This document shows positions 2,768 to 28,200 of a stretch of 64,000 nucleotides of DNA, one piece after another; within the stretch, counting starts at the first letter, position 1; each line of letters opens with the position of its first letter. The notes beneath the pieces were generated by a model. It was given only the letters and a program-made list of their open reading frames with translations. It made no database searches and had not been told where the DNA came from. The position numbers and the translations under genes were made by a program. The DNA comes from Macrostomum hystrix (Eukaryota > Animalia > Platyhelminthes): the NCBI GenBank assembly GCA_950097015.1, contig CATNEN010000010.1, forward strand, positions 2,976,001 through 3,040,000. The letters are read 5' to 3'.

Positions 2768-5700
2768 ATGGAAAAGACGTTCCTTATCGCTTTTTTCCTA
2801 TTAATGCTTTCTGCATCAAACTGCAGTGAGCACATAAAGAATTCTAAAGTAGTTCGTAAAATTGACCTAAGTACACAAGTAGTTAAGATCGAAACTGTTA
2901 TCTCTTCTGACAATTTCGGTTCAACTTACCTATTTGCTGCAGAGCCAGGATATGAAGATAATATCGCTTTTATTGGTGCATCTGTAAGTTCATATATTTT
3001 ATCTTTTTTCAGCCCTTTTTTGCCATACATTGTGAATTTTTTAATGATGTTTGTGTTGATTTTCTGGTTTTGTTTTCGACGCTGCTTTTGTCTGTAACCA
3101 TTACATGTAATGTTTGTAACCATTTTGAGAGGTGTCATTCTTTATACTTTTTAAATAAAAAATTTAGGAGTTCTTGCCATTTTTATATCATAGCTAGCAT
3201 TCTACAAATGGAAATTGTCATAGGCATCACCTTAATTATTTATATTGGAATCATCAGATGTACTAACAGAAATAGCTAGTGCCAAAAATAATTTAAACTA
3301 AAGTTGAACGAATGCCAACTTTTAACTCTAATAAGATTACTTATCTATTTGGCCTTGTTCAATAACATTATTTTATTAGGCAATGTACAAAGAAATAAAC
3401 TACAAGTACTAAGTACAAATACTTTAAAGTTTTTTTAGAATGACTAGGGAATCTTTTCTATATACATAAAAATGTCTGACACTGATAATAAAAAAACATC
3501 TAAACAAGAAGTAAAAGTTTGTTAGCTTTTACATTACATGTAAGTTATATATTGCTACACTTCAGGGCATAGCTAATGTGCCCAAAAGCTACAAAATTAT
3601 GGACATGACTGCTGTGTCCACACTATAGTCTTGGCTTGCTTATAGACATTGCAGCCATGTTTATAATGTTGGAAGTTCTAGGAACTGCGCATCACTGCCC
3701 CAAAGTAGTATGTCTATGGTTATAAAATGATACCATAGGGTATCAATTTACCCTATTTTATTTTGTTTAGTATATCACATGGTTAGCAGGTTAAAAAGGA
3801 CAAGAAAAATTAAAAAAAATGTAATAAATTATTATTAACACATTTTTCTTTTTTAGCTTGCTAATGCTTTCATTTCAATAATCTTTAAATGAGAAAATAA
3901 TCATTTGCCTTTCACAAAAAACTTAAATTTTTTCAGACAAAGTCTGGTGAGGAATCCCCACCATTACCAATCAAGACTGTTACTAAGAATGGAAAACAGT
4001 GAGTTGATTCAAAGTTTATTTTGGTGATGAAATTTTAAGGATTGACTGTTTGCTGGTTTGATCTAAAGGGAGTGTAATACCCTCAAACCTCAATTTGCCA
4101 CCTGACAGGCTGTACGAAATCGCCATTGGCACGCGTCCCTCAAGCCTGGTGGTGACGGCTCACTACACGCACAAGCTGGTGCCCTATCCCAGCGAGATAA
4201 CCCAGGCTGAGCGGCAGTTCCTGCGCTTCATTGGCAACGCCAAATTCTACTCGCCTTACGCTAGCGACTCTGTCGAGACACAGATTGTCACAGCTAATCC
4301 GAACATTCTGGATTACACCAATCTGCAGCCGGTCAACAAGCAGGAGTCCACTATCACCTATGGACCATTTAGTAATGTGCCCGCCTTCACCCAGCAGGAG
4401 GCAAGTTTACATATGCGCTTACTTTTGTAATTTGACTGAAGTTTAGTACATTTAAGGAAGTTAAAAAGAAGTATCAAAATTTACATTTTATTCCTATCTT
4501 ATCCCGCTTAGGTTAAAAAATCTTGGTCCACTTTTCCGTATCTCAAGACTATAAACCTGTAAATTTCTTGTTTTATTTTCCTCGTCTTACTTCCCGTATT
4601 CCTTGCCAACTTGGCCTATTAAACCGACATTTACTTTTTTCTTTCCATATCTTAGGTAAGCGTGCACTACGAGAACAATGCTCCATTCCTCACCATCGTG
4701 GACATGCTGCGTCATATTGAGGTGTCTCACTGGGGCAACATAGCCGTGGAAGAGAAGGTTCACGTCGTCCACTCCGGCGCCAAGCTGAAGGGCAGCTTCT
4801 CTCGCTACGAGTACCAGCGTAAGAACGACGGCGTCTCCAGCGTGCGCGCGTACAAGACCGTCCTGCCGGCCTCCGCCAAGGATGTCTACTATCGGGACGA
4901 CATCGGCAACATCAGCACGTCCAACCTGCGTGAACTGATCGACTCAGTTGAGATTGAACTGCGGCCCCGATTTCCTCTGTTCGGCGGCTGGAACACCGAC
5001 TACATCATTGGCTACAATGTGCCCAGCTACGAGTACCTATTCAACAGTGGCAACCAGTACGCCCTGCGCATTCGCTTCATTGATCACGTCCACGACGACA
5101 TGGTGGTGGACCGCGTCACCGTCAAGATTGTGCTGCCCGAGCTGGCAACCAACCTGCGCTACGAGGCGCCCTATCCAGTGATTGAGGGACCTCGCGAGCT
5201 AATCAAAACCTACCTGGACACTGTGGGACGACCAGTTCTGGTGCTAAGCAAGGTGAGGCACAGTTTTCATTCCTTAGTTTCCGTTTTTTCCTGCATTGAT
5301 AAACTTTACTTCGTTAACAAAGCTTCATTCTCTTCCTGCAATTCCGCGCAGGCCAACCTAGTTGACCAGCACATCCAGGAGCTGGTGGTTCGCTACGAGT
5401 TCGCCTCCTGGTCCCTGATTCGCGAGCCCCTGATGGCCACCGCCTTCTTCCTAGTGCTGTTCCTCAGCGTCATCCTGGCTGTCCGGCTCAACTTCTCCAT
5501 CGTGCAGGACGCCAGCGTCGAGATGAAGCAGCGCCTCGGCTGCCTGACCTCCGAGATCGTCACCCTTCAAGACAAGCGCTCGGCTCTGTACCAGTGCTAC
5601 GAGGACGCCATCAACAAGTTCAAGGCCGGCAAGGACCACAACCGGTTCAAGGCCGATGTTGCCAAGGTTTGTAGCGCTAAAAGTTCTCAATATAGGAGGA

Positions 5701-6665
5701 ACAATGAGTAGAAACACGGAGAAGACAGGTGCCCATACCCGCTAAAAAATAGGGATGTTTCTTTGGGTGATTCCAGTTGGAATCTGCGGTGTTTCCAGAA
5801 AAAGAAACAGCCGAACGCTGGAAACATACCAATCGGATGATTCCATGCTTAGAATCTACCCATCTGGGCGTTTTCTCGGTGCTTCTTGGTGGCGAAATGG
5901 AATCACCCAAAGAATCCTCCAGTTCGGAAGATTCCATGCTCAGAAACCGCCGAGGAATCGCCCGTAAATAATTTTCTGATTGTCCCATGGGCCACTGGTT
6001 CGGGTGATTCTTCGGCGGTTTCCGCACAATTGACGGTTACATCGGCTGCTTCCTGGTGGTTTCTTTAACTCTTGTGAGATAGGGGGGATTTTGGTAGATT
6101 CCACTCCTATTTTGCACAAAAAACCCGCCGAAGAAGCAGCCGAATTTTTTACAGGGTATTTGCTAGTTCCTGTGGGCCCATGATTTCCTATTTGCGGCCC
6201 TCAGCCGGTCCTACCTGCAATGGCCTTTTTAGGGATGCAGTTTTAGAGGCCAAAACAAGGAGTGTCTAGCAAATCAGATGAGACCCGTGAGCTTTGGAGA
6301 TTCGACTATTTAAAAATGTAATAATATTTACCTTCGCTCATGGCAGTTCTGAGGAGTAAAATTAACCCCATCTTTGCCAGGTCACCGCCGATCACAAGGC
6401 CCTGACCAAGAAGGTCACGGAGCTGATCAATTCTATCCGCAGCGATCCGGGCTTCTCTGCCCCGGCCGACCTGCTGGAACGCCTGAAGGATTTGAACACC
6501 CAGGACGCCCGCCTGGTTGAGCAACTTCAGTCCGCCGCCAGCCAGGCCGAGGCTCTGGTCTCCGGGCGCATCACGCGCCAGCAGTACCTGGAGGCCGACG
6601 CCAAGTACGTCAAGAGCAAGGAGGACGCTTTCGCTCGCATTGAGCAGCTGGTTGAGGGTCTCTGA
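2768..6665 (+). CDS. RPN1: Ribophorin I (oligosaccharyltransferase subunit 1), 588 aa. Exons 2768-2983, 3937-3998, 4109-4400, 4656-5252, 5352-5666, 6381-6665
   Basis: Signal peptide, then V.RKIDLSTQVVK, HYENNAPFLTI, IEVSHWGNIAVEE, GSFSRYEYQ, YYRDDIGNISTS, ELRPRFPLFGGW, TYLDTVGRP and a TM helix (EPLMATAFFLVLFLSVILAVRL). Exon sum is 1767 nt, in frame; intron 3 is GC-AG. Confidence 0.96.
5736..6158. mobile_element. Foldback/MITE-like insertion in RPN1 intron 5
   Basis: Imperfect terminal inverted repeats tacccgctaaaaaa / tttttacagggta. Internal inverted pairs ctttgggtgattcca (5761) / tggaatcacccaaag (~5899) and aaaccgccga (~5944) / tcggcggttt (~6012). No target-site duplication (TSD) identified. 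Confidence 0.4.
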
Positions 6666-9126: not shown

Positions 9127-11846
9127 GTGCACGCCTTAGCCCGATTCGCCAGCCGCGAAGAATCCATCCAGCCCAGGGAGGACGAGCTGCTGGCTGCTGT
9201 CGTCTCGGACGACACCGACATCATAGAGAGTATCATATCGTTTGGCAAGAATGTCGACAACTTCATCTACATCGATGGACAATTACTGACTCCAGTGATG
9301 ATTGCCTGCCTGTTCGGCAAGCCTGCTCCCCTCGCCAAGCTGATTGGCTACAACGTTGAGCTTGACCGCCAGAACGGACGGAATCACGGCATTGCAGCTC
9401 GCATCAATACACGGTTATCATCAGGTGGTTGCAACCAATCGCTTATCAACGCGTAGGTTGACGTCAATCTTCACGGCTGTTCGCCTCTCTACTTAGCTCT
9501 TCGATTTGGGCATTGTCGAGAGGTTAAACTGCTCATCAATGCTCAAGCTGCAGTTGACTAGCAAGACAACACTGGCGAGTCGCCTCTGCACGCGGCGTCA
9601 CGATGCAGCAGTCATCATCCTGTAGTTGAGCTGCTCATCAGAGCACACGCTGACGTCAATGTTCAGAACAACTCTGGCGAGACACCCTTTATGGCCTGCC
9701 TGTACAGCTATCAAATTATTGAGTCGCTTCTCAGAGTGCGAGCCGACGTCAACGTAAAAAATATGGACGGCGTTTCAGCCCTCCACGCAGCCTCTCTGAC
9801 GGGCGATTCGCAGTTAGTCAGCTTGGCCATCAGCGTTCTGGCGGATGTCAACCTACAAATAAACGCTGGCGATTCAGCACTGTAACATCGCGTCAATGCA
9901 CGGCCACAATCAGGTTGTGGAATCCCTCATCAAAGCTCACGCCGAAGTCAACCTTCAACGAAACATCGGCTCGTCTCCGCTAGACATCGCAGCGTATAAC
10001 GGCCATCACCAGGTCGTCGAGTCGCTCATTAAAGCGCAGGCAGATGTCAATCTGCAAAAAACACTGGCTCTTCCCCACTGTACATTGCCTCACAAAATGG
10101 TCATCATCGAGTTGCCGAGCTGCTCATCGCGGCTCATGTGGAAGTTGATACTAGAAATACTGAAGGTTGCTCACCTCTGTATGTTGCTTCTCAAAATGGG
10201 CACCTGCAGCTGGTGGTTGAGTTACTCATCAAGGCTTTATCAGACGTCAATCATCGGCACGGGGTCTATGGCTGCTTGCCCTTGTACATTGGCTGGCAAA
10301 ATGGTCACAATCGAGTTGTGAAGCAGCTCACCCGAGCGCAAGCCTGCGGTCATACGCTGGAACAATGTGAATGGCTTGTCTCCCTTGGAAATTGCGGTAC
10401 AGAATGTTCAGCGCGATGTTGTGGACTCTGATTAGTTCTCACTTTTCTCATATCTGCCTCCTCTGACCGGAAGATTTAGGCTGGGCTGGCGTCTCAAATG
10501 AGCATCATCGAGGGCCGCGCGGAGGCTCTGTTGATGAGGAGAAACCGAGAGGTCTACAATTCTCCTCATGCATAGAAAGGAAAGGCTTGGGGTGTAAAAA
10601 GCAACAAATTAGAACATTTTTATTGGTTCATCGATCGGAATATATTTTTCCGCTCACCAATCACACCTGGCTCGGAATCTCAATCTGCAATTTCAGTCCC
10701 AGCTGCGCAGAGCTGAGTAAAGAGCTGCATTACGCACTCACTCAGTCGGGGTTCGTACAATCCAGAACTGGCATGCAGAGCGCTGCTACCGATGTGCTTC
10801 AGGCTATCCAGAGAAAAATAAAGTCTGATGACGGAATTCACGTAGTCGGCAGCTTTTCCGAGGGCTGGGGAAACAGCTTGATTACACTCGATGGTAGAAC
10901 GGATATTGAGTTCGATATCGACATGATGCAGCTGCTACCTGGAAGGCCTTTTCACCTGAGAGGACTGTGCGATTGCAAGGTAGAATTCGCACAAACCGTA
11001 GAGTATAGCAATGGACACATTCTGAGCTCTGGCTATGGTGAGACTTGGTTGACTTGATGAATTTGTTTATGAGTGACACATACAAATGCAATGGTGAATA
11101 CGAAATAACCTTAATGACTTCAATGTTGCAGTCGACAACCCAGGGACGGCTTACGTCGGCTCCGCTCTCAGGCCAGCGGTGGATCTATAGTCACCGCCCG
11201 CCGTCTCTGCCGCTACCCTCCCATCGCACCGCTGCACCGCCCGAGCCTCCACCTCTAACATCCCGCATTCGGTGCTGCAGTCGCTCCAAAAAGAGATGAA
11301 GTCGCCTGCCTGTCACGTGGTGCAGGCAGCTACTCCTGGAATGGCGGGCCAGCAGCTCTGTGTGAGCACCAGCTTCTTGGAAAGGCGGCAGCTGCGGTGT
11401 CTGGGAACTTTGCAGGCGGTTTCTCTAAACTGGTTACTGAAGAAGGGCTTCAAGTCCTATCACGCAAAGACAATCACCTTCCGAATGCAGGAGGAACCGG
11501 GTGAGCAGTGGACGCCGAGACGCACGAGCTACAGATGCTGCTTGATGGCATGGAGAGCAGCAGCCGATGTGAAAGACTCGACGGTCGAATCATGCAACAT
11601 TTCTTTCTGAGCGATGCCGCCGTCTACCTCAGAGGGGTTGACCCAAATTCAGAAGACAGCGCGTGGAAAACCTTGAATGCTGCAGCCGACGCCTTGATTG
11701 ACGCCTTCAATCAATTGCCCCAAATGCTTCGGCAATTCAAGGACAGTCTGCAACTTGTCAGCAATGGCTGGTTCCGCTTCCACCCTTCCTGGTTCTTTCA
11801 ACTTTGGACACAAACCTTTTTAAATATTAAAAGTATGCTTTTATAA
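9127..11846 (+). pseudogene. Ankyrin-repeat + Mab-21/cGAS-like nucleotidyltransferase (cGLR-type) gene, disrupted
   Basis: About 11-12 ankyrin repeats (e.g. GSSPLDIAAYNGHHQVVESLIKAQADVN). Then the NTase motif VVGSFSEGWG..DIEFDIDMM, and Mab-21-like CHVVQAA, STSFLERR, KSYHAKTITFRM and MQHFFL segments. In-frame stops at 9454, 9559 and 11188; frameshifts near 9884, 10060 and 11520. Probable introns ~10550-10696 and 11038-11131. The 5' end is uncertain. Confidence 0.8.
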
Positions 11847-13899
11847 GCGCGAATCTGAAGATGAACTCCTCAATCGGCCTCCTTATTTTGGATTTGCTAA
11901 AAATTGTCTTCACTGGGCCGTCGCATGATCTTCTTTGATTTTCTTTTCAAGAGTACAAACCTCTAAAGTGCAATCAGTTTCTTTCCGATTAAACTGTTCA
12001 ACATGATTTAGGAAAGCCAAACTAGTTTGCGATGACTTGATCGGTAAGACTGTAGTTTTCTAAACACACAGTTAGTAAAAAAAATTGCATTTGTGGAATT
12101 TCGACAACCAGTAAAGTGTATAAGGCAACACAAAGTTTTGCTCGTAAAAAGTAAAAAAATTAATTATTGGCGATGCTCACTTAAGATAAGCCATTGAGAA
12201 GTCTTGTCACTGTGCCAGATCAAACTCATTTTTTACGAAGACTAATTGCAAACATGTCTCACGATTTTGAAAACGTGTTGTATATTGGCGCGTATTTAAA
12301 AGACACTATCGAAATAATTATCGGACATTACGTTACATGATTACATACATTATTAGTAAGATAACATACATTGTCGAGACAGATAGCAATCTGTCATTGC
12401 GTTTCGAAACGCCAACACGAAAACACCAACATTGCAGCACAAAGCGGCATTGAAATAATAATTAAAATGGCTTCTTGCTATAATTAAATTTCCTATAAAT
12501 TGCTATAATAACATTTTACACTATTTAAATCATATGATATCTGTGAGTGTTGTACATACACAAGTAGTATTTCAGTAAGGATTAGACAATGAATCAGTCT
12601 GTAAATATAAGCGGAATCGTTTTTCAGCTAGGTAACCATCGCTAAAAAGTTAAGTGCTGAGTGCAAAAGACGGCAAAGCAATTTTAAAAGAGTAAAGATA
12701 AATATTTGTTTCAATTAAGATAAGAGTGTCATCTGTATTGACTTTGGGGCAATATGCGTTTTGAGTTTCAGCACAGAGATGCTTATGGCCTATGCTTAAT
12801 TTTATTCTTATAACTTTTAGTCTACATAGAATTACTTAGGTCTAGTAGTCAATCGGAATCCAAGGCAACAATTCAACAAAGATAGTGAGCTGGAGTGTAT
12901 ATATATTTATACTTCAGTATTAGGCCTAACAAAAAGTGGTATGACTTTGTCCAACTTCCCTTGGTAATTTGCTTAAAATTGGCTTAGTAATTTGCTAGCT
13001 GGGTACACTAACCCCACTTCAACTAGAGGGAGGTTTTAGGGGTTTTGAGTAACAACTGTATGGCTGCTGGTGAGTCGCATATAGTCTAGGCCTAGCCACC
13101 ACATGTTCCTATGCCTAGTTAGTTAGTTAGCATTCTGCAAGGCCTAAATTTTATTTTTATACTGGGTGACTGCAAAACATTAAAAAGGTATGAAAAAGAA
13201 GTTTTAGCTATGAAGCTGTTAATCAAACTACATTACATATTATTTTTTGTGCTATGCTAGATGTCCTATTGGCATTCTCTAAAGATGCTTATAATATTTC
13301 ATATAAAATGTTTTGAAATTTCTAGTTAGCCAGATACATGTTAGCATTATTGATTAGGCCTATGTCTATAATTTCTAGACAAATATCAAAGTATTGCCTT
13401 TTCAGAGGCATTTTTATTAGCATTGGCTTTGTATATTTGCTTAGTAAAATATATATTGAACTTTTTAAGTCATAACTATACAGATACACAATATAAAAAT
13501 GTATACACTTTAAATTTATACTATACTTTTTTATTGGCAATCTTTAGGAGTAGAATTTCAGCAGGGATCCAATGTTTTTTTTACATGGAGTTAGAATTCT
13601 GCCAATGCAGTTCTAAAATTAGCTATGAAATGATAAAATTACTCTGGCTCTTATAGTTATTGTAGCCTACCAGTATTTGAACCATATGTAATTAGCTATT
13701 CACAAATTAATAAATGTAACAGTGTCTAAAACACTTTTGGTTAGTTATCTTCAAGCTTATGGCAACTCTTGCATATTCTAGATTGTGATTTAAAAAGAAA
13801 TACTTTTTTTAGGAAATAGATTTTCTTATAAATATTGTGCTCATAAATGATAAAGAAATAACTTATGAATCAAACCTATTCTTTGCAGTCCTGACATCA

Positions 13900-13977
13900 A
13901 TGTATCAGCATCATAATCCCCACATGCACCAAGCTCCACCCCCTGTGCCACACACAATGTCCATGTCAATGTCGCCC

Positions 13978-14008
<31 letters not shown>

Positions 14009-17000
14009 TTCAGCAGCAACAGTTTCAACAGCAGCAGCAGCAGATGATGGTGATGCCAGCCCCAGCTCGGCAGGACATGATTCCACTAGCCAGGGTGATC
14101 GAATTCGCCTGCCAGAAGGCCTACACAGACCTGAACCTGCTTAGCGAGCTGCTGCATAGCAAGAATGACATAGAGCGCAAAATTGAACTGGTGAAGTACC
14201 TGAGCCGCATTCGCTACACCCTCATCCGCCTCCTGGCTTTGGTGAAATGGGCCAGCGGCGCCAGCCGGGTTGACCAATGCGAACAGATCATTGCCTACCT
14301 GGAAGAGCAGAGCAACCTATTGTTTGGCACCGCCAACTGGCTCATGGACCTGGCCAAGGGTACCCTGACCGGCGCTCGACTGCCGCCATTCGCCACCATC
14401 ACAGCTGTTGACATCTTCACCCAGCACACCTACACCCGGCTGCCCGCCTGTGTCAAGCGGCTGGCCGGAATTCCGCCAGAACCGATCCAGCTCTGGGAGC
14501 AGCGCGAGTGTCTTGAGCAGCTGGACAGTCTGATCCTGTATCGGCTCACCATGACCGAGATACCGCTGGCTATGCGACAGATTAAGGTGCTTATTGGCTG
14601 ACATCTTATCATTCAATAATTACAACCTCATTTAAACCCGAATCACCTAGTGTCAAGCTAAGCGAGCAAATCTCTTAGCATGACCTTAGCTATCATCCTA
14701 ATGTTGGTCTCATCTATCACTCCTAAGTGACCTCACCTCATTCCTAAATTACCTGACCTCACTCACTCCTGAGGGACCTGACCTGACCTCACTCACTCCT
14801 GAGGGACCTGACCTCACTCACTCCTGAGGGACCTGACCTGACCTCACTCACTCCTGAGGGACCTGACCTGACCTCACTCACTCCTGAGGGACCTGACCTC
14901 ACTCACTCACTCCTGAGGGTCCTGACCTGACCTCACTCACTCCTGAGGGTCCTGACCTCACTCACTCCTGAGGGACCTGACCTGACCTCACTCACTCCTG
15001 AGGGTCCTGACCTGACCTCACTCACTCCTGAGGGTCCTGACCTCACTCACTCCTGAGGGACCTGACCTCAATCACTCCTGAGGGTCCTGACCTCACTCAC
15101 TCCTGAGGGACCTGACCTCACTCACTCACTCCTGAGGGTCCTGACCTGACCTCACTCACTCCTGAGGGTCCTGACCTCACTCACTCCTGAGGGACCTGAC
15201 CTGACCTCACTCACTCCTGAGGGTCCTGACCTGACCTCACTCACTCCTGAGGGTCCTGACCTCACTCACTCCTGAGGGACCTGACCTCAATCACTCCTGA
15301 GGGACCTGACCTGACCTCACTCACTCCTGAGTGACCTGACCTGACCTCACTCACTCCTGAGTGACCTGACCTGACCTCACTCACTCCTGAGTGACCTGAC
15401 CTGACCTCACTCACTCCTGAGGGACCTGACCTCACTCACTCCTGAGGGACCTGACCTGACCTCACTCACTCCTGAGGGACCTGACCTCACTCACTCCTGA
15501 GGGTCCTGACCTGACCTCACTCACTCCTGAGGGTCCTGACCTGACCTCACTCACTCCTGAGGGACCTGACCTCACTCACTCACTCCTGAGGGTCCTGACC
15601 TGACCTCACTCACTCCTGAGGGTCCTGACCTCACTCACTCCTGAGGGACCTGACCTGACCTCACTCACTCCTGAGGGACCTGACCTGACCTCACTCACTC
15701 CTGAGGGACCTGACCTCACTCACTCCTGAGGGACCTGACCTCAATCACTCCTGAGGGACCTGACCTCACTCACTCCTGAGGGACCTGACCTGACCTCACT
15801 CACTCCTGAGGGTCCTGACCTGACCTCACTCACTCCTGAGGGTCCTGACCTCACTCACTCCTGAGGGACCTGACCTCAATCACTCCTGAGGGACCTGACC
15901 TGACCTCACTCACTCCTGAGTGACCTGACCTGACCTCACTCACTCCTGAGTGACCTGACCTGACCTCACTCACTCCTGAGTGACCTGACCTGACCTCACT
16001 CACTCCTGAGGGACCTGACCTCACTCACTCCTGAGGGACCTGACCTGACCTCACTCACTCCTGAGGGACCTGACCTCACTCACTCCTGAGGGTCCTGACC
16101 TGACCTCACTCACTCCTGAGGGTCCTGACCTGACCTCACTCACTCCTGAGGGACCTGACCTCACTCACTCACTCCTGAGGGTCCTGACCTGACCTCACTC
16201 ACTCCTGAGGGTCCTGACCTCACTCACTCCTGAGGGACCTGACCTGACCTCACTCACTCCTGAGGGACCTGACCTGACCTCACTCACTCCTGAGGGACCT
16301 GACCTTACTCACTCCTGAGGGACCTGACCTCAATCACTCCTGAGGGACCTGACCTCACTCACTCCTGAGGGACCTGACCTGACCTCACTCACTCCTGAGG
16401 GTCCTGACCTGACCTCACTCACTCCTGGGGGTCCTGACCTCACTCACTCCTGAGGGACCTGACCTCAATCACTCCTGAGGGACCTGACCTGACCTCACTC
16501 ACTCCTGAGTGACCTGACCTGACCTCACTCACTCCTGAGTGACCTGACCTGACCTCACTCACTCCTGAGTGACCTGACCTGACCTCACTCACTCCTGAGT
16601 GACCTGACCTGACCTCACTCACTCCTGAGGGACCTGACCTGACCTCACTCACTCCTGAGGGACCTGACCTCACTCACTCCTGAGGGTCCTGACCTGACCT
16701 CACTCACTCCTGAGGGTCCTGACCTGACCTCACTCAATCCTGAGGGACCTGACCTCACTCACTCCTGAGGGTCCTGACCTGACCTCACTCACTCCTGAGG
16801 GTCCTGACCTCACTCACTCCTGAGGGACCTGACCTGACCTCACTCACTCCTGAGGGTCCTGACCTGACCTCACTCACTCATGAGGGTCCTGACCTCACTC
16901 ACTCCTGAGGGACCTGACCTCAATCACTCCTGAGGGACCTGACCTGACCTCACTCACTCCTGAGGGACCTGACCTCACTCACTCACTCCTGAGGGTCCTG

Positions 17001-20000
17001 ACCTGACCTCACTCACTCCTGAGGGTCCTGACCTCACTCACTCCTGAGGGACCTGACCTGACCTCACTCACTCCTGAGGGTCCTGACCTGACCTCACTCA
17101 CTCCTGAGGGTCCTGACCTCACTCACTCCTGAGGGACCTGACCTCAATCACTCCTGAGGGACCTGACCTGACCTCACTCACTCCTGAGTGACCTGACCTG
17201 ACCTCACTCACTCCTGAGTGACCTGACCTGACCTCACTCACTCCTGAGGGACCTGACCTCACTCACTCCTGAGTGACCTGACCTGACCTCACTCACTCCT
17301 GAGGGACCTGACCTCACTCACTCCTGAGTGACCTGACCTGACCTCACTCACTCCTGAGGGACCTGACCTGACCTCACTCACTCCTGAGGGACCTGACCTC
17401 ACTCACTCCTGAGGGACCTGACCTGACCTCACTCACTCCTGAGGGACCTGACCTGACCTCACTCACTCCTGAGGGACCTGACCTCACTCACTCCTGAGGG
17501 ACCTGACCTGACCTGACCTCACTCACTCCTGAGGGACCTGACCCGACCTCACTCACTCCTGAGTGACCTGACCTCACTCACTCCTGAGGGACCTGACCCG
17601 ACCTCACTCACTCCTGAGTGACCTGACCTGACCTGACCTCACTCACTCCTGAGGGACCTGACCTGACCTCACTCACTCCTGAGGGACCTGACCTGACCTG
17701 ACCTCACTCACTCCTGAGTGACCTGACCTGACCTGACCTCACTCACTCCTGAGTGACCTGACCTGACCCGACCTCACTCACTCCTGAGTGACCTGACCTG
17801 ACCTGACCTCACTCACTCCTGAGGGACCTGACCTGACCTGACCTCACTCACTCCTGAGTGACCTGACCTGACCTGACCTCACTCACTCCTGAGTGACCTG
17901 ACCTGACCCGACCTCACTCACTCCTGAGTGACCTGACCTGACCTGACCTCACTCACTCCTGAGGGACCTGACCTGACCTCACCTCACTCCTAAGTGACTA
18001 GTCCTCACGTCATGTGACCTTATCTTACCCCTAATAGCTCGTTAACTCGAAAACAGAAACACAATTGTGCATTATAGCATCAAAAGTTTGTACAACAGAA
18101 ACGAGTCTCAAGACACCTTATCTCAACTCAAGTGACCATATATTTTTTGCCGATTACCTTGCCTCAATTTCAAGACAAACAACTTAATCCATTCTTAAAC
18201 AGCATATCACCCTAGCTAGCTGCCCCGACCCTTGCCACTCAGGTGTACAATGGTCGCGCGGTGCTGACAGTGCCGCACGAGTTCTCCGTATCCCTGACGC
18301 TGATGTCAGACTCCCTGTCCAATCCGTGGCGCATTCTCAACATCAAATGCCTGCTGCGCGACCTGCACACGGGCCGCGGTAAGCCGCTGGTACACCCTCT
18401 CCAGATGCAGTGGCTGCATCAGCGCTGCCAGGACCGCATCATCAGCAAGGATATCGATCCCAGACCACCGCTGGTGCATCTGTACGACATGCTGCACTCG
18501 TTCTGCACCTTCCTGCAGCTGGACCTACTCTACGAGCAGGCCTGCCGACTGATCCGGCTGAGGTTCGAAGATCTGCTGACTGTGGAAAAGTACACACCGG
18601 GTAGCTCGCTCCAGCTGGTCTATTGGAGAGATCTGAGGCGACCCGCGGCTGCCAGCTATCGGGTGCGCGGGCACAGCCTGCGGCTGCACGCGGACCCGCT
18701 GGACCCCCGGCAGCCAATCTGCATCACGCACTTTCCGGATCTGTCGGCCAGGTGAGTTTAACTTTGTAGAAGTTACTGTGGGAATATTTCAGATTGCATA
18801 TATTTTGCCGACAATTAAATTTAATTTGGCCGCGCCGCCGAATCGAACTCATGGAACTTGTTGCGAGAAACAATGGCATTAGGCCCTTCTGTCACTCACC
18901 CGTCAATCCAGCGATGCCATCTCTATCGGCCGCTGCATCCGGTCTGACGAGCTGTCGCTGGAGCGCCTCCTAGACCGGACAATCCAGTGCCGCAGCCGCG
19001 ACCTGCTGTACAAAGCCTACAAACTGCTGGCCCTGCTAGTGGCCGAGCCGCCAGTCCGCTCCGCTGAGTCCCTCACCATCAGCCTGCTGCAGCCGTCGGC
19101 CAGGCACGAGCGCCTGTCAATTACTGTCAACGCCTATCGCGGTCTCTACGCTGTCCGGCTACCATCCGGATCCCGCCGGCCGTGTCGGCACCTTGCCGAG
19201 CTGGAGGACCGGCTAAACGAGGATCAGCCATCTTTGCGTCGCCTAGCAACGGCACTCGGTGGCCTTCGCGCCTGGCTGCTTTGTCGCCGCGTCCAGGCCC
19301 TGTTCCCTGACAGGCGTGTCGCCTCCAGCCTGCCGACCGCCCGGCCGCTGCCGCTAGCTTTTGCCAGCGTTGTTAACACAGCGCCTCACGTCTGCTATGT
19401 TCAGCTGCATCGCTACCAGAGCAATTACCTGGCACTGGTGCCCACCGGTGGCTTGAACCCCGGTTTCACCTGTTATTACATAACCGGCTCAGCCCAGGCT
19501 GGCTATTATCTGCGGCCCGCCAAGCTGTGCCAGATGCGGCCGCCGGATCTGCTGCAGCCAACGGCCAGGCCGCAGCCCACGGCTGACCCGCTGAAGTTTC
19601 TGGCCAAATGCCGCCAGTCCGGCCCGCTGTCCCTGCCGCGTCCGGCCGAGTCGCGGCTCCTGCAGGCCGCTTGGCTGGGCGAATTTGTGGACTCTATCGA
19701 AGAGGACCACTTGCTGCACCAGGTCATGTGCGAGCTGGCCAGATCCTGCCTGCCGCACAGGGAGTTCTCGCCCGACTCTGCCGGCATGAGAGCGCTCACT
19801 TTGCACAGGTGAGTAGCTGAGAGTCAGTCTCTTGTATCGTGTGTGCGTGTCTGTTGTGCCTCTATTTGTCCCTGTCTCCCTGTCTGTCTTGGGAGTCTTT
19901 TTGTAGCTGCCTGAAGTGTCTGTTTGCGGCTGCCTGAGGTGTCTGTTTGCGGCTGCCTGAGGTGTCTGTTTGCGGCTGCCTGAGGTGTCTGTTTGCGGCT

Positions 20001-24033: not shown

Positions 24034-24309
24034 TGAAGCCAACTAGCTAGCCAAGGCCTGTTAATTAAAAGAATTCTGATAATGTACTGCCGAATGTTAG
24101 TCAACACCCTGGCCCCATTGTATTATTCAGCTTCACTAATTGTGATATAAAATGGTATAGGTCATTTATTACAGCAATTATCAATGTCCTCTACTTTTTG
24201 GCCGTGTCTTTCTTTCTGTGTAACATTCTACCTCTACAGACACCTGAAATTAATAGGTGTCTGTTGTCTGGAATTGAGGTGTCTGAAATTCGTCAAAAAT
24301 CCTAAAAAT

Positions 24310-25100
24310 GACAAATCAGCAGTCACTAAAAATCCCCAATCAACAGACACTTGAAATCCCCAATCAACAGACACTTGAAATCCCCAATCAACAGGCACTA
24401 GGAATCCCCAATCAACAGTCACTAGAAGTCCCCAATCAGCAGACACCTGAAATCCCCAATCAACAGACACTAGGAATCCCCAATCAACAGTCACTAGAAG
24501 TCCCCAATCAGCAGACACCTGAAATCCCCAATCAACAGGCACTAGGAATCCCCAATCAACAGGCACTAGGAATCCCCAATCAACCGACACTTAAAATCTA
24601 CAATCAACAGGCACTTAAAATCCCCAATCAACAGTCACTAGAAATCCCCAATCAACAGGCACTTAAAATCCCCAATCAACCGACACTTAAAATCTACAAT
24701 CAACAGACACTAGGAATCCCCTATCAACAGGCACTTGAAATCCCCAATCAACAGACACTAGGAATCCCCAATCAACAGACACTAGGAATCCCCAATCAAC
24801 AGACACTAGGAATCCCCAATCAACTGACACTAGGAATCCCCAATCAACTGACACTAGGAATCCCCAATCAACAGACACTAGGAATGCCCCATCAACCGAC
24901 ACTAGGAATCCCCAATCAACAGTCACTTGGAATCCCCAATCAACAGTCACTTGGAATCCCCAATCAACTGACACTAGGAATCCCCAATCAACAGACACTA
25001 GGAATCCCCAATCAACAGTCACTTGGAATCCCCAATCAACTGACACTAGGAATCCCCAATCAACAGTCACTAGAAATCCCCAATCAACAGTCACTAGTAA
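24310..25100. repeat. 24-bp tandem repeat (aatccccaatcaacagacactagg) between TRAPPC5 and CAPN7
   Basis: About 32 copies, ending ~40 bp before the acceptor at 25139. Confidence 0.95.
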
Positions 25101-25248
25101 TACCCATCCTTCATATATTCAATTCTCAACTTCTTACAGCTCGGCACAATGAACGTAAACCAGCGAATTTGACCCCAGCTGAGGCAATCGAGCATAGATC
25201 AAGACTTGGATCAAGACCATCGAGCGGGCATCAGAGAGCTGCCAACCG

Positions 25249-28200
25249 ATGTCCAATCAGCAGAACTCGCGCCTGCTCCAGCTGGAAGAGGATGGGAGGA
25301 GTCTGGCCTTGCGAGCCGTCGAACAGGACCGCGCCGGCAACTCCGCCACCGCCTGCTTCTTCTACACCGAGGCCGCACAGGCCCTGCTAGCTGCCAATGA
25401 GGAGGGCTCCAGGCTGCCCAACCTGCTGGCCATTGTGAAGGACTACGTCTCACGCGCCGAGCAGTTGAAGGCTCCGGCTAATTCAACAGCCGCAGCCGGT
25501 GCCAACCCCGCCGCCAGGGCCCAGTCCAAGACGCCGGGGCAGCTGCAGCTGGAGCGAGCCCGCTACCTCCTATCCGAGGCCCTCGAAGACGACGAGAACG
25601 GCCAGAGCGCCGACGCAATCAGCAAATATGTGCAGGCTGTGGAGGCTCTGTTGAGGCTGCAGAAGTCGGCGGGCTCCGATGCCGGCCTCAGACAGAAGTG
25701 CCAGGCTATGGCCAAACAGGTGCTAATAGACTAAGTCGTGTGTTGAGGGCCGAATGGATGACCGAAAAGAGGGCTTGGGGCTTGTTCGATCTACGTACGC
25801 ATCACTGAACACACAAGGCACAATGACTAACTATCAAAAAGTCAGGACAGATGTACATACCTGTGTTAGAGTGTGCCTGCTTACGTATGTGTGTGTATGT
25901 TGCATTCAGGAGTCAGCGGAACAAGCAAAATACTGCTTACTACTATTAAGTAGTGTGTTCAGCATTTCAGCTTTCTGTGCATTTCGCGCTAATCTCCACC
26001 CAGGCTCTGGAGCGGGCCGAGGCTTTGAAATCCAAGACTGCGCCGCCACCGCTACAGCTTCCCAGTGCGCCCACGGACGTGCCCGACGGGCCGCTCAGCG
26101 AGCCGCCGCCTCCGCCGTCGCCGCCGCCGCCACCGCGGCAGCAGCAGCAGCCGAAGCGCCCGCCAAGCGTAGCCGAAGCCTACACCAAAGCCGAGATAGC
26201 CGTCCTGCGGTCAACCTCGCGCATCAACGGCCGCAACTATCTGCCGTTCATGGCCTCCGATGCCCGCGAGCAGTTCGCCTTCCCGCTGCCGTTCACCGAT
26301 CCTGACGGCCTGCTGCCTCTGTCTGCCAAGCAGCAGCGCAGCCTGTCCCGCTGGGCCAGGCCTGATCAGCTGACCGCCGAGCCCAAGATGATCCTGCTGG
26401 TGTCGCCCATGAGCATCACCCAGACCATTGTGTCCGACTGCTCCTTCGTGGCCTCCATGGCCGTGGCCGCCCAGTACGAGAGGCGATTCAAACGGCAGCT
26501 GGTTACCAACATTATCTACCCGCAGAACAGGCGCGGCGAACCGGTCTACAATCCCTGCGGCAAGTACATGATCAAGCTGCACCTGAATGGTGTGCCGCGC
26601 AAAGTCATTGTTGACGACCAGCTGCCGGTGTCCCGCTCCGGCGAGTTAATTGGAGCCTACTCAAACAATTCGGCCGAGTTCTGGGTGTCTTTTCTGGAGA
26701 AGGCCTACATGAAGGTTAGCTTACTTATATGGTACACTCATTATCTGAGTTATCCTACACTCATTATCTCACCTGAATTTTCCTACACTCAATATCTCAC
26801 CTGAATTTTCCTACACTCATTATCTCACCTGAAGTATCCTACACTCATTATCTCACCTGTGTTATCCTACACTCATTATCTCACCTGAATTTTCCTACAC
26901 TCATTATCTCACCTGAAGTATCCTACACTCATTATCTCACCTGTGTTATCCTACACTCATTATCTCACCTGAAGTATCCTACACTCATTATCTCAGCTGA
27001 GTTATCCTACACTCATTATCTCACCTGAATTATCCTACACTCATTATCTCACCTGTGTTATCCTACACTCATTATCTCACCCCATTCGTCTGCAGGTGAT
27101 GGGCGGCTACGACTTCCCGGGTTCGAACTCGAATATCGATCTGCACGCGCTGACTGGCTGGATCCCGGAGCGCATCCCCATAGACCTGGACAACCCGGTG
27201 CGGTTCAAGAAGGAGCAGGTCTTTACTAAGCTGCTGGACAGATTCCACCAGGGCCACTGTCTCATCACGGCAGCCACCGGGCCGATGTCGCAGACGGACG
27301 CGGACCGCGCCGGCCTGGTTGAGACGCACGCCTACGCTGTGCTGGACATCCGGGTGGCAGCTGGGCACCGCCTGCTCATGCTGAAGAATCCATGGAATCA
27401 TCTCAGTTGGAATGGCAACTTCTCGCGTAAGGACTCTCGCAATTGGACACCGGAGCTGGAGCGCCTGCTGAACTATGACACCAAGAGCGCCAAGCTGTAC
27501 GACAACGGCGTCTTCTGGATCGACTACGACAGCCTCTGTCGCTTCTTTGAGGTGCTCTACGTCAGCTGGAACCCGGACCTGTTTCCGCACACCAGCTGCC
27601 TGCACGACACCTGGCCAGCAAAGGAGGGCCCGAAGAAGGACCGCTTCTGCATTGCGGACAACCCGCAGTACCTCCTGACTGTGGCGGCACATCGGCCCTG
27701 CCCAGTTTGGGTGCTGCTCTGCCGACACATTGTGGATAGGCGAGACTTCGCTGATAACCAGGTGAGACTTTGAGACAGTTCATGAGCAGACGAATGTGAG
27801 GCCTACAAAAATTTTAAATCCCTTTGTAGGCAGTGTGAAATTTTGGGGTCAAATGTGCCTTCTAGGAAATTTCAATTTAAGGAATGTTCTTTCTAGAACT
27901 TTTCTGTTTATAAAATGTGCATTCTAAAAAACTTCAATTTCGTGAATGTGCATTCTTGGATATTTTTTTAGTTTAGGAAATATGCTTTCTAGGAAATTTC
28001 AATTTAGGGAATGTGCATTCTTGGACATTTTTTAATTTAGAGAATGTGCATTCTTGGAAAGTACAATTTTGGGAATGCGCATTTTAGGAAGTTTCAATTT
28101 AGAGAATATGCATTCATGGAAATTTGAATTTAGGGAATGCGCATTCTTGGAAAGTACAATTAAGAGAATGCGCATTCTTGGAAAGTACAATTAAGGGAAT

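Follow-up and report, generated by a model that had tools for sequence, protein, structure and literature searches.

In a stretch of 64,000 nucleotides from the flatworm Macrostomum hystrix (contig CATNEN010000010.1 of assembly GCA_950097015.1, hereafter the window, G000:C10:2,976,001-3,040,000), we analyzed a broken gene in which an array of ankyrin repeats precedes a cGAS-like nucleotidyltransferase of the Mab-21/cGLR group. The copy is solitary between an exon for ribophorin I (4662-5708) and an exon for MED14 (13837-14598), and lies outside the clusters of the same family on contigs C1, C3, C18, and C38. From its sequence, it is very probably a unitary, unprocessed pseudogene of the Macrostomum ankyrin-cGLR family. 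The window exons were searched separately, piece by piece, against the genome (220,453,370 bases in 42 contigs), and the full-length evidence came from an intronless paralogue and public proteins. In window coordinates, the parts of the copy are as follows.

9127-11846, + strand: dead ankyrin-cGLR copy, whole interval
9127..9129, + strand: former start codon, now GTG, at a spacing identical to that of the ATG of a paralogue on contig C2
9127..10432, + strand: ankyrin array of 13 repeat units including N- and C-terminal caps (Pfam, repeat hidden Markov model, and three-frame translations)
10433..10591, + strand: degenerate linker and end of exon 1, inferred boundary; the position matches the 40-60-residue post-repeat linker of the M. 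lignano proteins P0004 and P0039
10592..10696, + strand: putative intron 1, 105 nt, GT..AG (GTGTAA donor, TTTCAG acceptor), joining in frame to exon 2
10697..11037, + strand: exon 2, N-terminal lobe of the nucleotidyltransferase, lesion-free, by similarity to paralogues
11038..11131, + strand: intron 2, 94 nt, GTGAGA..TTGCAG, splice signals intact, read from the sequence
11132..11789, + strand: exon 3 remnant, remainder of the cGAS-like core; frame switches seen by tblastn with paralogue exon 3
11790..11846, + strand: unrelated sequence as far as a TAA; similarity at the protein and DNA levels ends at RFHP (11775-11786)

Structure of the gene remnant

The reference for the gene model was the paralogue L041/L048 on contig C2, in which an ATG opens a single ankyrin exon of >1570 codons, a second exon carries GSFSEAWGNS..DIDSDID, and a third exon of ~500 codons carries PAVDLV, CHVV, LRVSSSFLERR, KSYHAKT, and HFFL ahead of a long tail. 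The parts of the window copy are arranged in the same order. On G000:C2, the ATG stands 18 codons ahead of an 'EELLAA' motif; the window has GTG at equal spacing, and no in-frame ATG was found from 9127 back to the upstream stop.

Exon 1 spans 9127 to ~10591. Stop-free pieces of the window matched the Pfam ankyrin models (Ank/Ank_2; Ank E 8e-17, 5e-10, and 3e-13), and a repeat model built from two family proteins placed 13 units between ~9181 and 10432, alternating over two frames. A preliminary description, made by a model from the letters alone, had recognized the ankyrin array and the nucleotidyltransferase motifs correctly and had counted ~11-12 repeats. In the linker, no similarity is left, and frame 0 is open from 10467 to the GT at 10592. 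The acceptor of intron 1 is homologous to the start of paralogue exon 2, and its donor was placed only by the GT and frame continuity. The ankyrin part and the core are colinear on one strand, ~260 nt apart, with the plausible 105-nt intron between them.

Exon 2 aligned with paralogue exon 2 at 60-63% identity over ~120 residues (E 1e-43). Intron 2 gives a phase-1 join, ..SSGY-V-DNPG.., as at the boundary between exons 2 and 3 in the spliced public protein P0004. With both introns in place, the window copy is not a processed (retro-copied) pseudogene. In the exon 3 remnant, the Mab-21_C-like helices extend to the MQHFFL motif; DNA identity with paralogues reaches 73% and ends at ~11790. Homology to every paralogue stops at ~11786-11790, and the final 57 nt of the interval are unrelated; the end at 11846 given in the preliminary description was therefore too far downstream.

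Active site and enzyme identity

The enzyme part is marked by a series of motifs on the + strand: GSFSEG (10848-10865, with the Gly-Ser codons at 10848-10853), Asp-Ile-Asp (DID, 10914-10922), the third catalytic Asp (11182-11184), VTARRLCRYPPIAP (11190-11231, one frame off), CHVVQAA (11311-11331), STSFLERR (11365-11388), KSYHAKTITFRM (11452-11487), and MQHFFL (11592-11609). The motif positions given in the preliminary description, such as those of GSFSEG and DID, proved exact. In alignments with canonical Mab-21 proteins, GS, D-I-D, and the third D fall on GS, SDxD, and the invariant D, respectively, which identified a polymerase-beta-type active site. All three catalytic acidic residues are retained in the dead copy, that is, the third Asp in addition to the pair reported before. 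The loop between GS and DxD, described previously as unusually long, is a signature of the family: the spacer comprises 20 residues with a conserved GWGN motif family-wide, compared with ~12 residues in canonical Mab-21 proteins.

An insertion in the N-terminal lobe (window 10950-11030 and 11200-11215) carries a set of His and Cys residues that vary little or not at all across the family (H..G.C.C ... GH ... C.YP; columns H98, C..C, G120-H121, and C154 of alignment A3). These residues could form a metal site differing from the zinc thumb of cGAS.

Several lines of evidence support the assignment of the enzyme part to the Mab-21/cGAS-like (cGLR) group. With the enzyme part of the intronless paralogue (L045:3481-5313) as the query, phmmer searched 1.84 billion representatives exhaustively and retrieved only 106 proteins, and the weaker of these matches were Pfam-verified Mab-21 plus Mab-21_C proteins. 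Against PDB sequences, phmmer with two paralogues found nothing relevant, and the top 15 matches of a family profile were only cGLR1 (8gjy, best E 8.5e-5) and cGAS; this profile was built from ankyrin-poor members, as a profile retaining the ankyrin columns was swamped by ankyrin proteins. In an hhalign comparison, the family profile aligned with canonical Mab-21 representatives over 288 columns covering both lobes (99.85%, E 5.9e-31). The pairings were GS/GS, SDID/SDxD, PAxDxV/invariant Asp, CHxV/'lVP' strand, RVSTxxLER/WRISFSxxER, LKxYHAKT/SYHLKT, and HFF/YF. The profile alignment thus bears out the motif equivalences proposed in the preliminary description, with CHVV corresponding to the 'lVP' strand, STSFLER to WRISFS..ER, and KSYHAKT to SYHLKT. 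Window 11239-11520 alone matched the canonical Mab-21 profile with 96% probability (E 5e-9), and window exon 2 alone matched it weakly (13%, E 0.002) with GS and DxD placed correctly.

The two Pfam profiles suggested for checking the assignment gave different results. PF20266 (Mab-21_C) scored above its 24.1-bit cut-off at 90 genomic loci, including the neighboring gene L043 (31.9 bits), whereas the genome scan with PF03281 (Mab-21, N-terminal) found only the canonical Mab21 gene on contig C24 and no member of the family. The enzyme pieces of the window itself, which are broken, had no Pfam match, Mab-21_C included. In two structure searches with an intact paralogue, every row shown (~45-50 each) was cGAS, cGLR, MAB21L1, or MB21D2, which confirmed a cGAS-like bilobed fold for the predicted structure of that paralogue, as anticipated in the preliminary description.

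That the enzyme part is another polymerase-beta-type nucleotidyltransferase (OAS-type, poly(A)-polymerase-type, or bacterial CD-NTase-like) appears highly improbable. The failure of the Mab-21 N-terminal model on the window pieces and on every paralogue would suit such an enzyme, as would the length of the GS-to-DxD spacer; however, neither the window pieces nor the paralogues had a Pfam OAS or PAP match, and neither enzyme type was among the structure-search rows shown.

Lesions and status of the copy

Four in-frame TAG stops occur in the copy, at 9454, 9559, 10433, and 11188. The frame of the ankyrin array changes near 9378, 9432, 9880, 10060, and 10347. Right after the third catalytic Asp, a 2-nt TA duplication (11186-11187) creates the TAG at 11188; the frame of exon 3 returns near 11243 by a further shift, and a deletion of ~16-17 nt near 11518 shifts it again. 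The frame changes number at least eight in total. The C-terminal tail of the family, ~250 residues in intact paralogues, is absent. A repeat or transposon behind this 3' loss was sought in the flank 11790-13800, which consists of unique DNA and not of repeats. The preliminary description had rightly called the copy dead and had undercounted its lesions, listing 3 stops and at least 3 frameshifts without the lost start and tail. In a test of intact coding capacity, the copy failed on its start, its stops, its frame, and its tail; it cannot encode a protein or enzyme of the ankyrin-cGLR type, and we infer that it has no residual function. The retention of both introns points to an origin by DNA duplication, after which the copy would have decayed in place.

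Four points weigh against the reading of this locus as a pseudogene of the ankyrin-cGLR family. Two concern its membership: PF03281 misses the window pieces, six paralogues, and the family as a whole, and the modeled paralogue used for the fold test is distant, being ~30% identical to the clade of the window copy and neither that copy nor its nearest relative. Two concern its death, in that single-base indels of a long-read assembly could in principle be errors and that a gene dead as a protein gene may still be transcribed.

According to Wiberg et al. (2023; PMC10468722), the assembly is PacBio-based, and five of the frame changes sit in the repetitive ankyrin array, where polishing may fail. 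It is nevertheless most improbable that the animal carries an intact gene and that the stops and frameshifts stem from errors of assembly or polishing. The four TAG stops are base substitutions, and the change of ATG to GTG is another; the dinucleotide duplication lies outside any homopolymer. Together with the deletion of ~16-17 nt and the complete absence of the ~250-codon tail, these substitutions are changes that long-read indel error cannot explain. Moreover, other family genes of this assembly stay open for 950 to >1570 codons across ankyrin arrays that are longer than the one in the window.

The locus might instead be a transcribed pseudogene that yields, for instance, small RNAs or an RNA regulating the many paralogues. 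The GT..AG signals kept in both introns would suit this reading, as would exon 3, whose DNA is still as much as 73% identical to that of about 20 paralogues. We consider this very unlikely, since an identity of 73% is low for RNA-based cross-regulation and four-base splice signals can persist by chance.

The ankyrin-cGLR family in the M. hystrix genome

Window exon 2 matched at least 145 places in the genome (best paralogues E 1e-43), and the exon 3 piece matched at least 82 (best E 8e-31). Stops were present in 4 of the 145 exon-2 matches, and nearly all family loci had open exons. These counts establish the intact paralogues that the preliminary description expected elsewhere. Its further proposal, birth-and-death evolution of an expanded family, rests on very few dead copies.

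The ankyrin repeats and the GS..DxD lobe are encoded in one uninterrupted frame in L045 (~950 codons, intronless), L043 (718 codons), and L049 (452 codons). These single-frame paralogues and the full-length M. lignano fusions P0004 and P0039 demonstrate that the fusion of ankyrin repeats and enzyme is real for the family, and that both parts belong to one gene, as had been claimed.

Active-site residues were compared in a sample of 31 exon-2 copies and 28 exon-3 copies. About 29 of the 31 exon-2 copies have retained their catalytic residues; among the loci retrieved, L046 (GN, AIN) was the single copy without GS and DxD. The third acidic residue was missing from no more than one or two of the exon-3 copies; L039 has Asn at this position, and the third Asp of L045, which was missed by the pattern script, is present by alignment. 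An intact member and the two exceptions are located as follows.

G000:C10:3056001-3066000, - strand: L043, intact member with a 718-codon frame for ankyrin repeats and N-terminal lobe and a 466-codon exon above the Mab-21_C cut-off; 21 kb past the right end of the window
G000:C39:19901001-19908000: L046, degenerate active site with GN..AIN for GS..DID, otherwise open
G000:C3:11166083-11169400: L039, Asn for the third Asp, otherwise open

Two further loci differ in their ankyrin part. L052 (G000:C33:5291001-5298000) is near-identical to L043 and has its ankyrin frame split into 276 + 495 codons; it is a recently duplicated, frameshifted copy or else an uncollapsed haplotype. L042 (G000:C18:10001-20000), a copy from the tandem cluster on contig C18, has no open ankyrin frame within 6.5 kb upstream of its enzyme exons, where a frame resembling a retrotransposon integrase was found. 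In some members of the C18 cluster, the ankyrin exon may be lacking or farther off.

A close duplicate of the pseudogene was sought in the genome and none was found, the best DNA identity elsewhere being 73% in exon 3 only. Compared with clades of its own genome and with M. lignano representatives, the window copy showed amino-acid identities of 56-65% in exon 2 and 57-75% in exon 3, approximately the same as between other lineages of the family. As the window copy is about as distant from the sampled paralogues as the sub-lineages are from each other, it represents an orphaned lineage that is old, not a duplicate that failed recently.

Relationship to known proteins

All of the closest public proteins come from Macrostomum lignano, and UniProt labels several family members as Mab-21 domain-containing. 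PAA65091.1 / A0A267EUB9 (P0004, 1117 aa) and A0A1I8G2N0 (P0039) share the N-terminal cap, the ankyrin array, and the linker with the window copy, as well as the motifs GSFSEGWGNSL..SDIDV, PAxDxV, CHVV, LRVSTSFLERR, KSYHAKT, and HFFL. Identity between the M. lignano proteins and the window pieces was 65% for exon 2 and 73-75% for exon 3. P0004 and P0039 are intact, full-length, and tailed, whereas the window copy, from another species, is broken and tail-less.

The family has been catalogued before. In a survey of cGLRs across animals, ANK-cGLR was a minority architecture, and accessions of M. lignano with Ank_2 appear in the table of domains (Li et al., 2023; bioRxiv 10.1101/2023.02.22.529553, PMC9980059). 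Five M. lignano proteins of the ankyrin-cGLR family were cloned for the screen in that study, for example PAA86972.1, which carries GSFAEAWGNSL..DLDADVDV; cGLRs other than Mab21 were absent from most flatworms, and no Macrostomum enzyme is named in the main text (Li et al., 2023). The catalogue treats neither pseudogenes nor M. hystrix. Since the fusion family was already listed in 2023, the novelty attached to it in the preliminary description was overstated, and the locus is an ordinary one.

Human and mouse cGAS and oyster Cv-cGLR1 (PDB 7ftu, 4k97, and 8gjw/8gjy) are ~15% identical to the family. The alignment shows nothing in the family that corresponds to the zinc thumb of cGAS. The family also differs from cGAS and Cv-cGLR1 in its GS-to-DxD loop, which is ~8 residues longer and has the conserved GWGN, in the ankyrin array at its N terminus, and in its helical tail, which comprises ~280 residues and has no clear structural match. 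MAB21L1/Mab-21 (PDB 5eom; single orthologue at G000:C24:4.85 Mb) has the fold and the Mab-21_C domain in common with the family. The canonical Mab21 gene scored 129 bits with Pfam Mab-21 and 100 bits with Mab-21_C, whereas the ankyrin family scored nothing and 27-44 bits, respectively. Unlike MAB21L1, the ankyrin family keeps the full catalytic triad.

Predicted function and a candidate receptor

Beyond the demonstrated anatomy, homology, and lesions of the window copy and the fold of one paralogue, homology suggests how the intact gene type may work. The N-terminal ankyrin array would serve as an input that binds a ligand or partner. The cGAS-like nucleotidyltransferase core, with its Gly-Ser, Asp-x-Asp, and third Asp, would make a nucleotide second messenger once activated, and the family-specific helical tail may act in output or in regulation. 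Both the enzyme activity of intact members and the protein-sensing role that the preliminary description proposed for the ankyrin repeats are predictions.

A receptor of the STING type was sought by a Pfam scan of the genome, a search that the preliminary description had recommended. It yielded one STING_LBD match on contig C2, which remained just under the cut-off (25 bits versus 27 bits, E 1.4e-5).

G000:C2:9104529-9104996, - strand: STING-like open frame of 337 codons, read as L053:1000-2010:-

The start of this frame (..FAWNFAFTFLRLILPKL..) is similar to the first helix in ligand-binding domains of STING, and its 14 PDB matches, all weak, were STING without exception. A word-based search returned no homologues, and a search of the protein atlas was empty. 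The encoded protein is a possible receptor for the products of the family.

On a broader and rather doubtful reading, the locus may be a fossil of a flatworm-specific innate-immune repertoire of >100 ankyrin-cGLR genes, which would signal via very diverged soluble STING-like proteins and in which the turnover of copies would record an arms race with pathogens. The signaling link and the arms race are speculative parts of this reading.

Other features of the window

Just downstream of the MED14 exon, window 14728-17998 contains a tandem array of ~113 copies of a 30-bp unit (87% matches) that is strongly C-rich on the + strand. At 24308-25387 (+), a 360-codon open frame beginning with ATG matched Pfam Gp5_trimer_C, a repeat domain of phage T4 gp5, above the cut-off (E 5e-15); in an animal genome, this match is probably repeat-driven. 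Open frames adjoining it match calpain (25953-26801).

Implications

As one decayed copy, the locus itself is of little weight, and the dead copy adds little to the reading as a fossil repertoire. It does record that some lineages of the family have died out. The Macrostomum ankyrin-cGLR family, confirmed as cGAS-like in the predicted fold and with its catalytic residues mostly kept, occupies well over a hundred loci in a compact genome of 220 Mb. For studies of cGLR evolution, the useful material is its intact paralogues, such as the intronless 948-codon gene L045 (G000:C7:10,397,470-10,400,313), the three-exon gene at C2:4.86 Mb, and the clusters on contigs C1, C3, C18, and C38.

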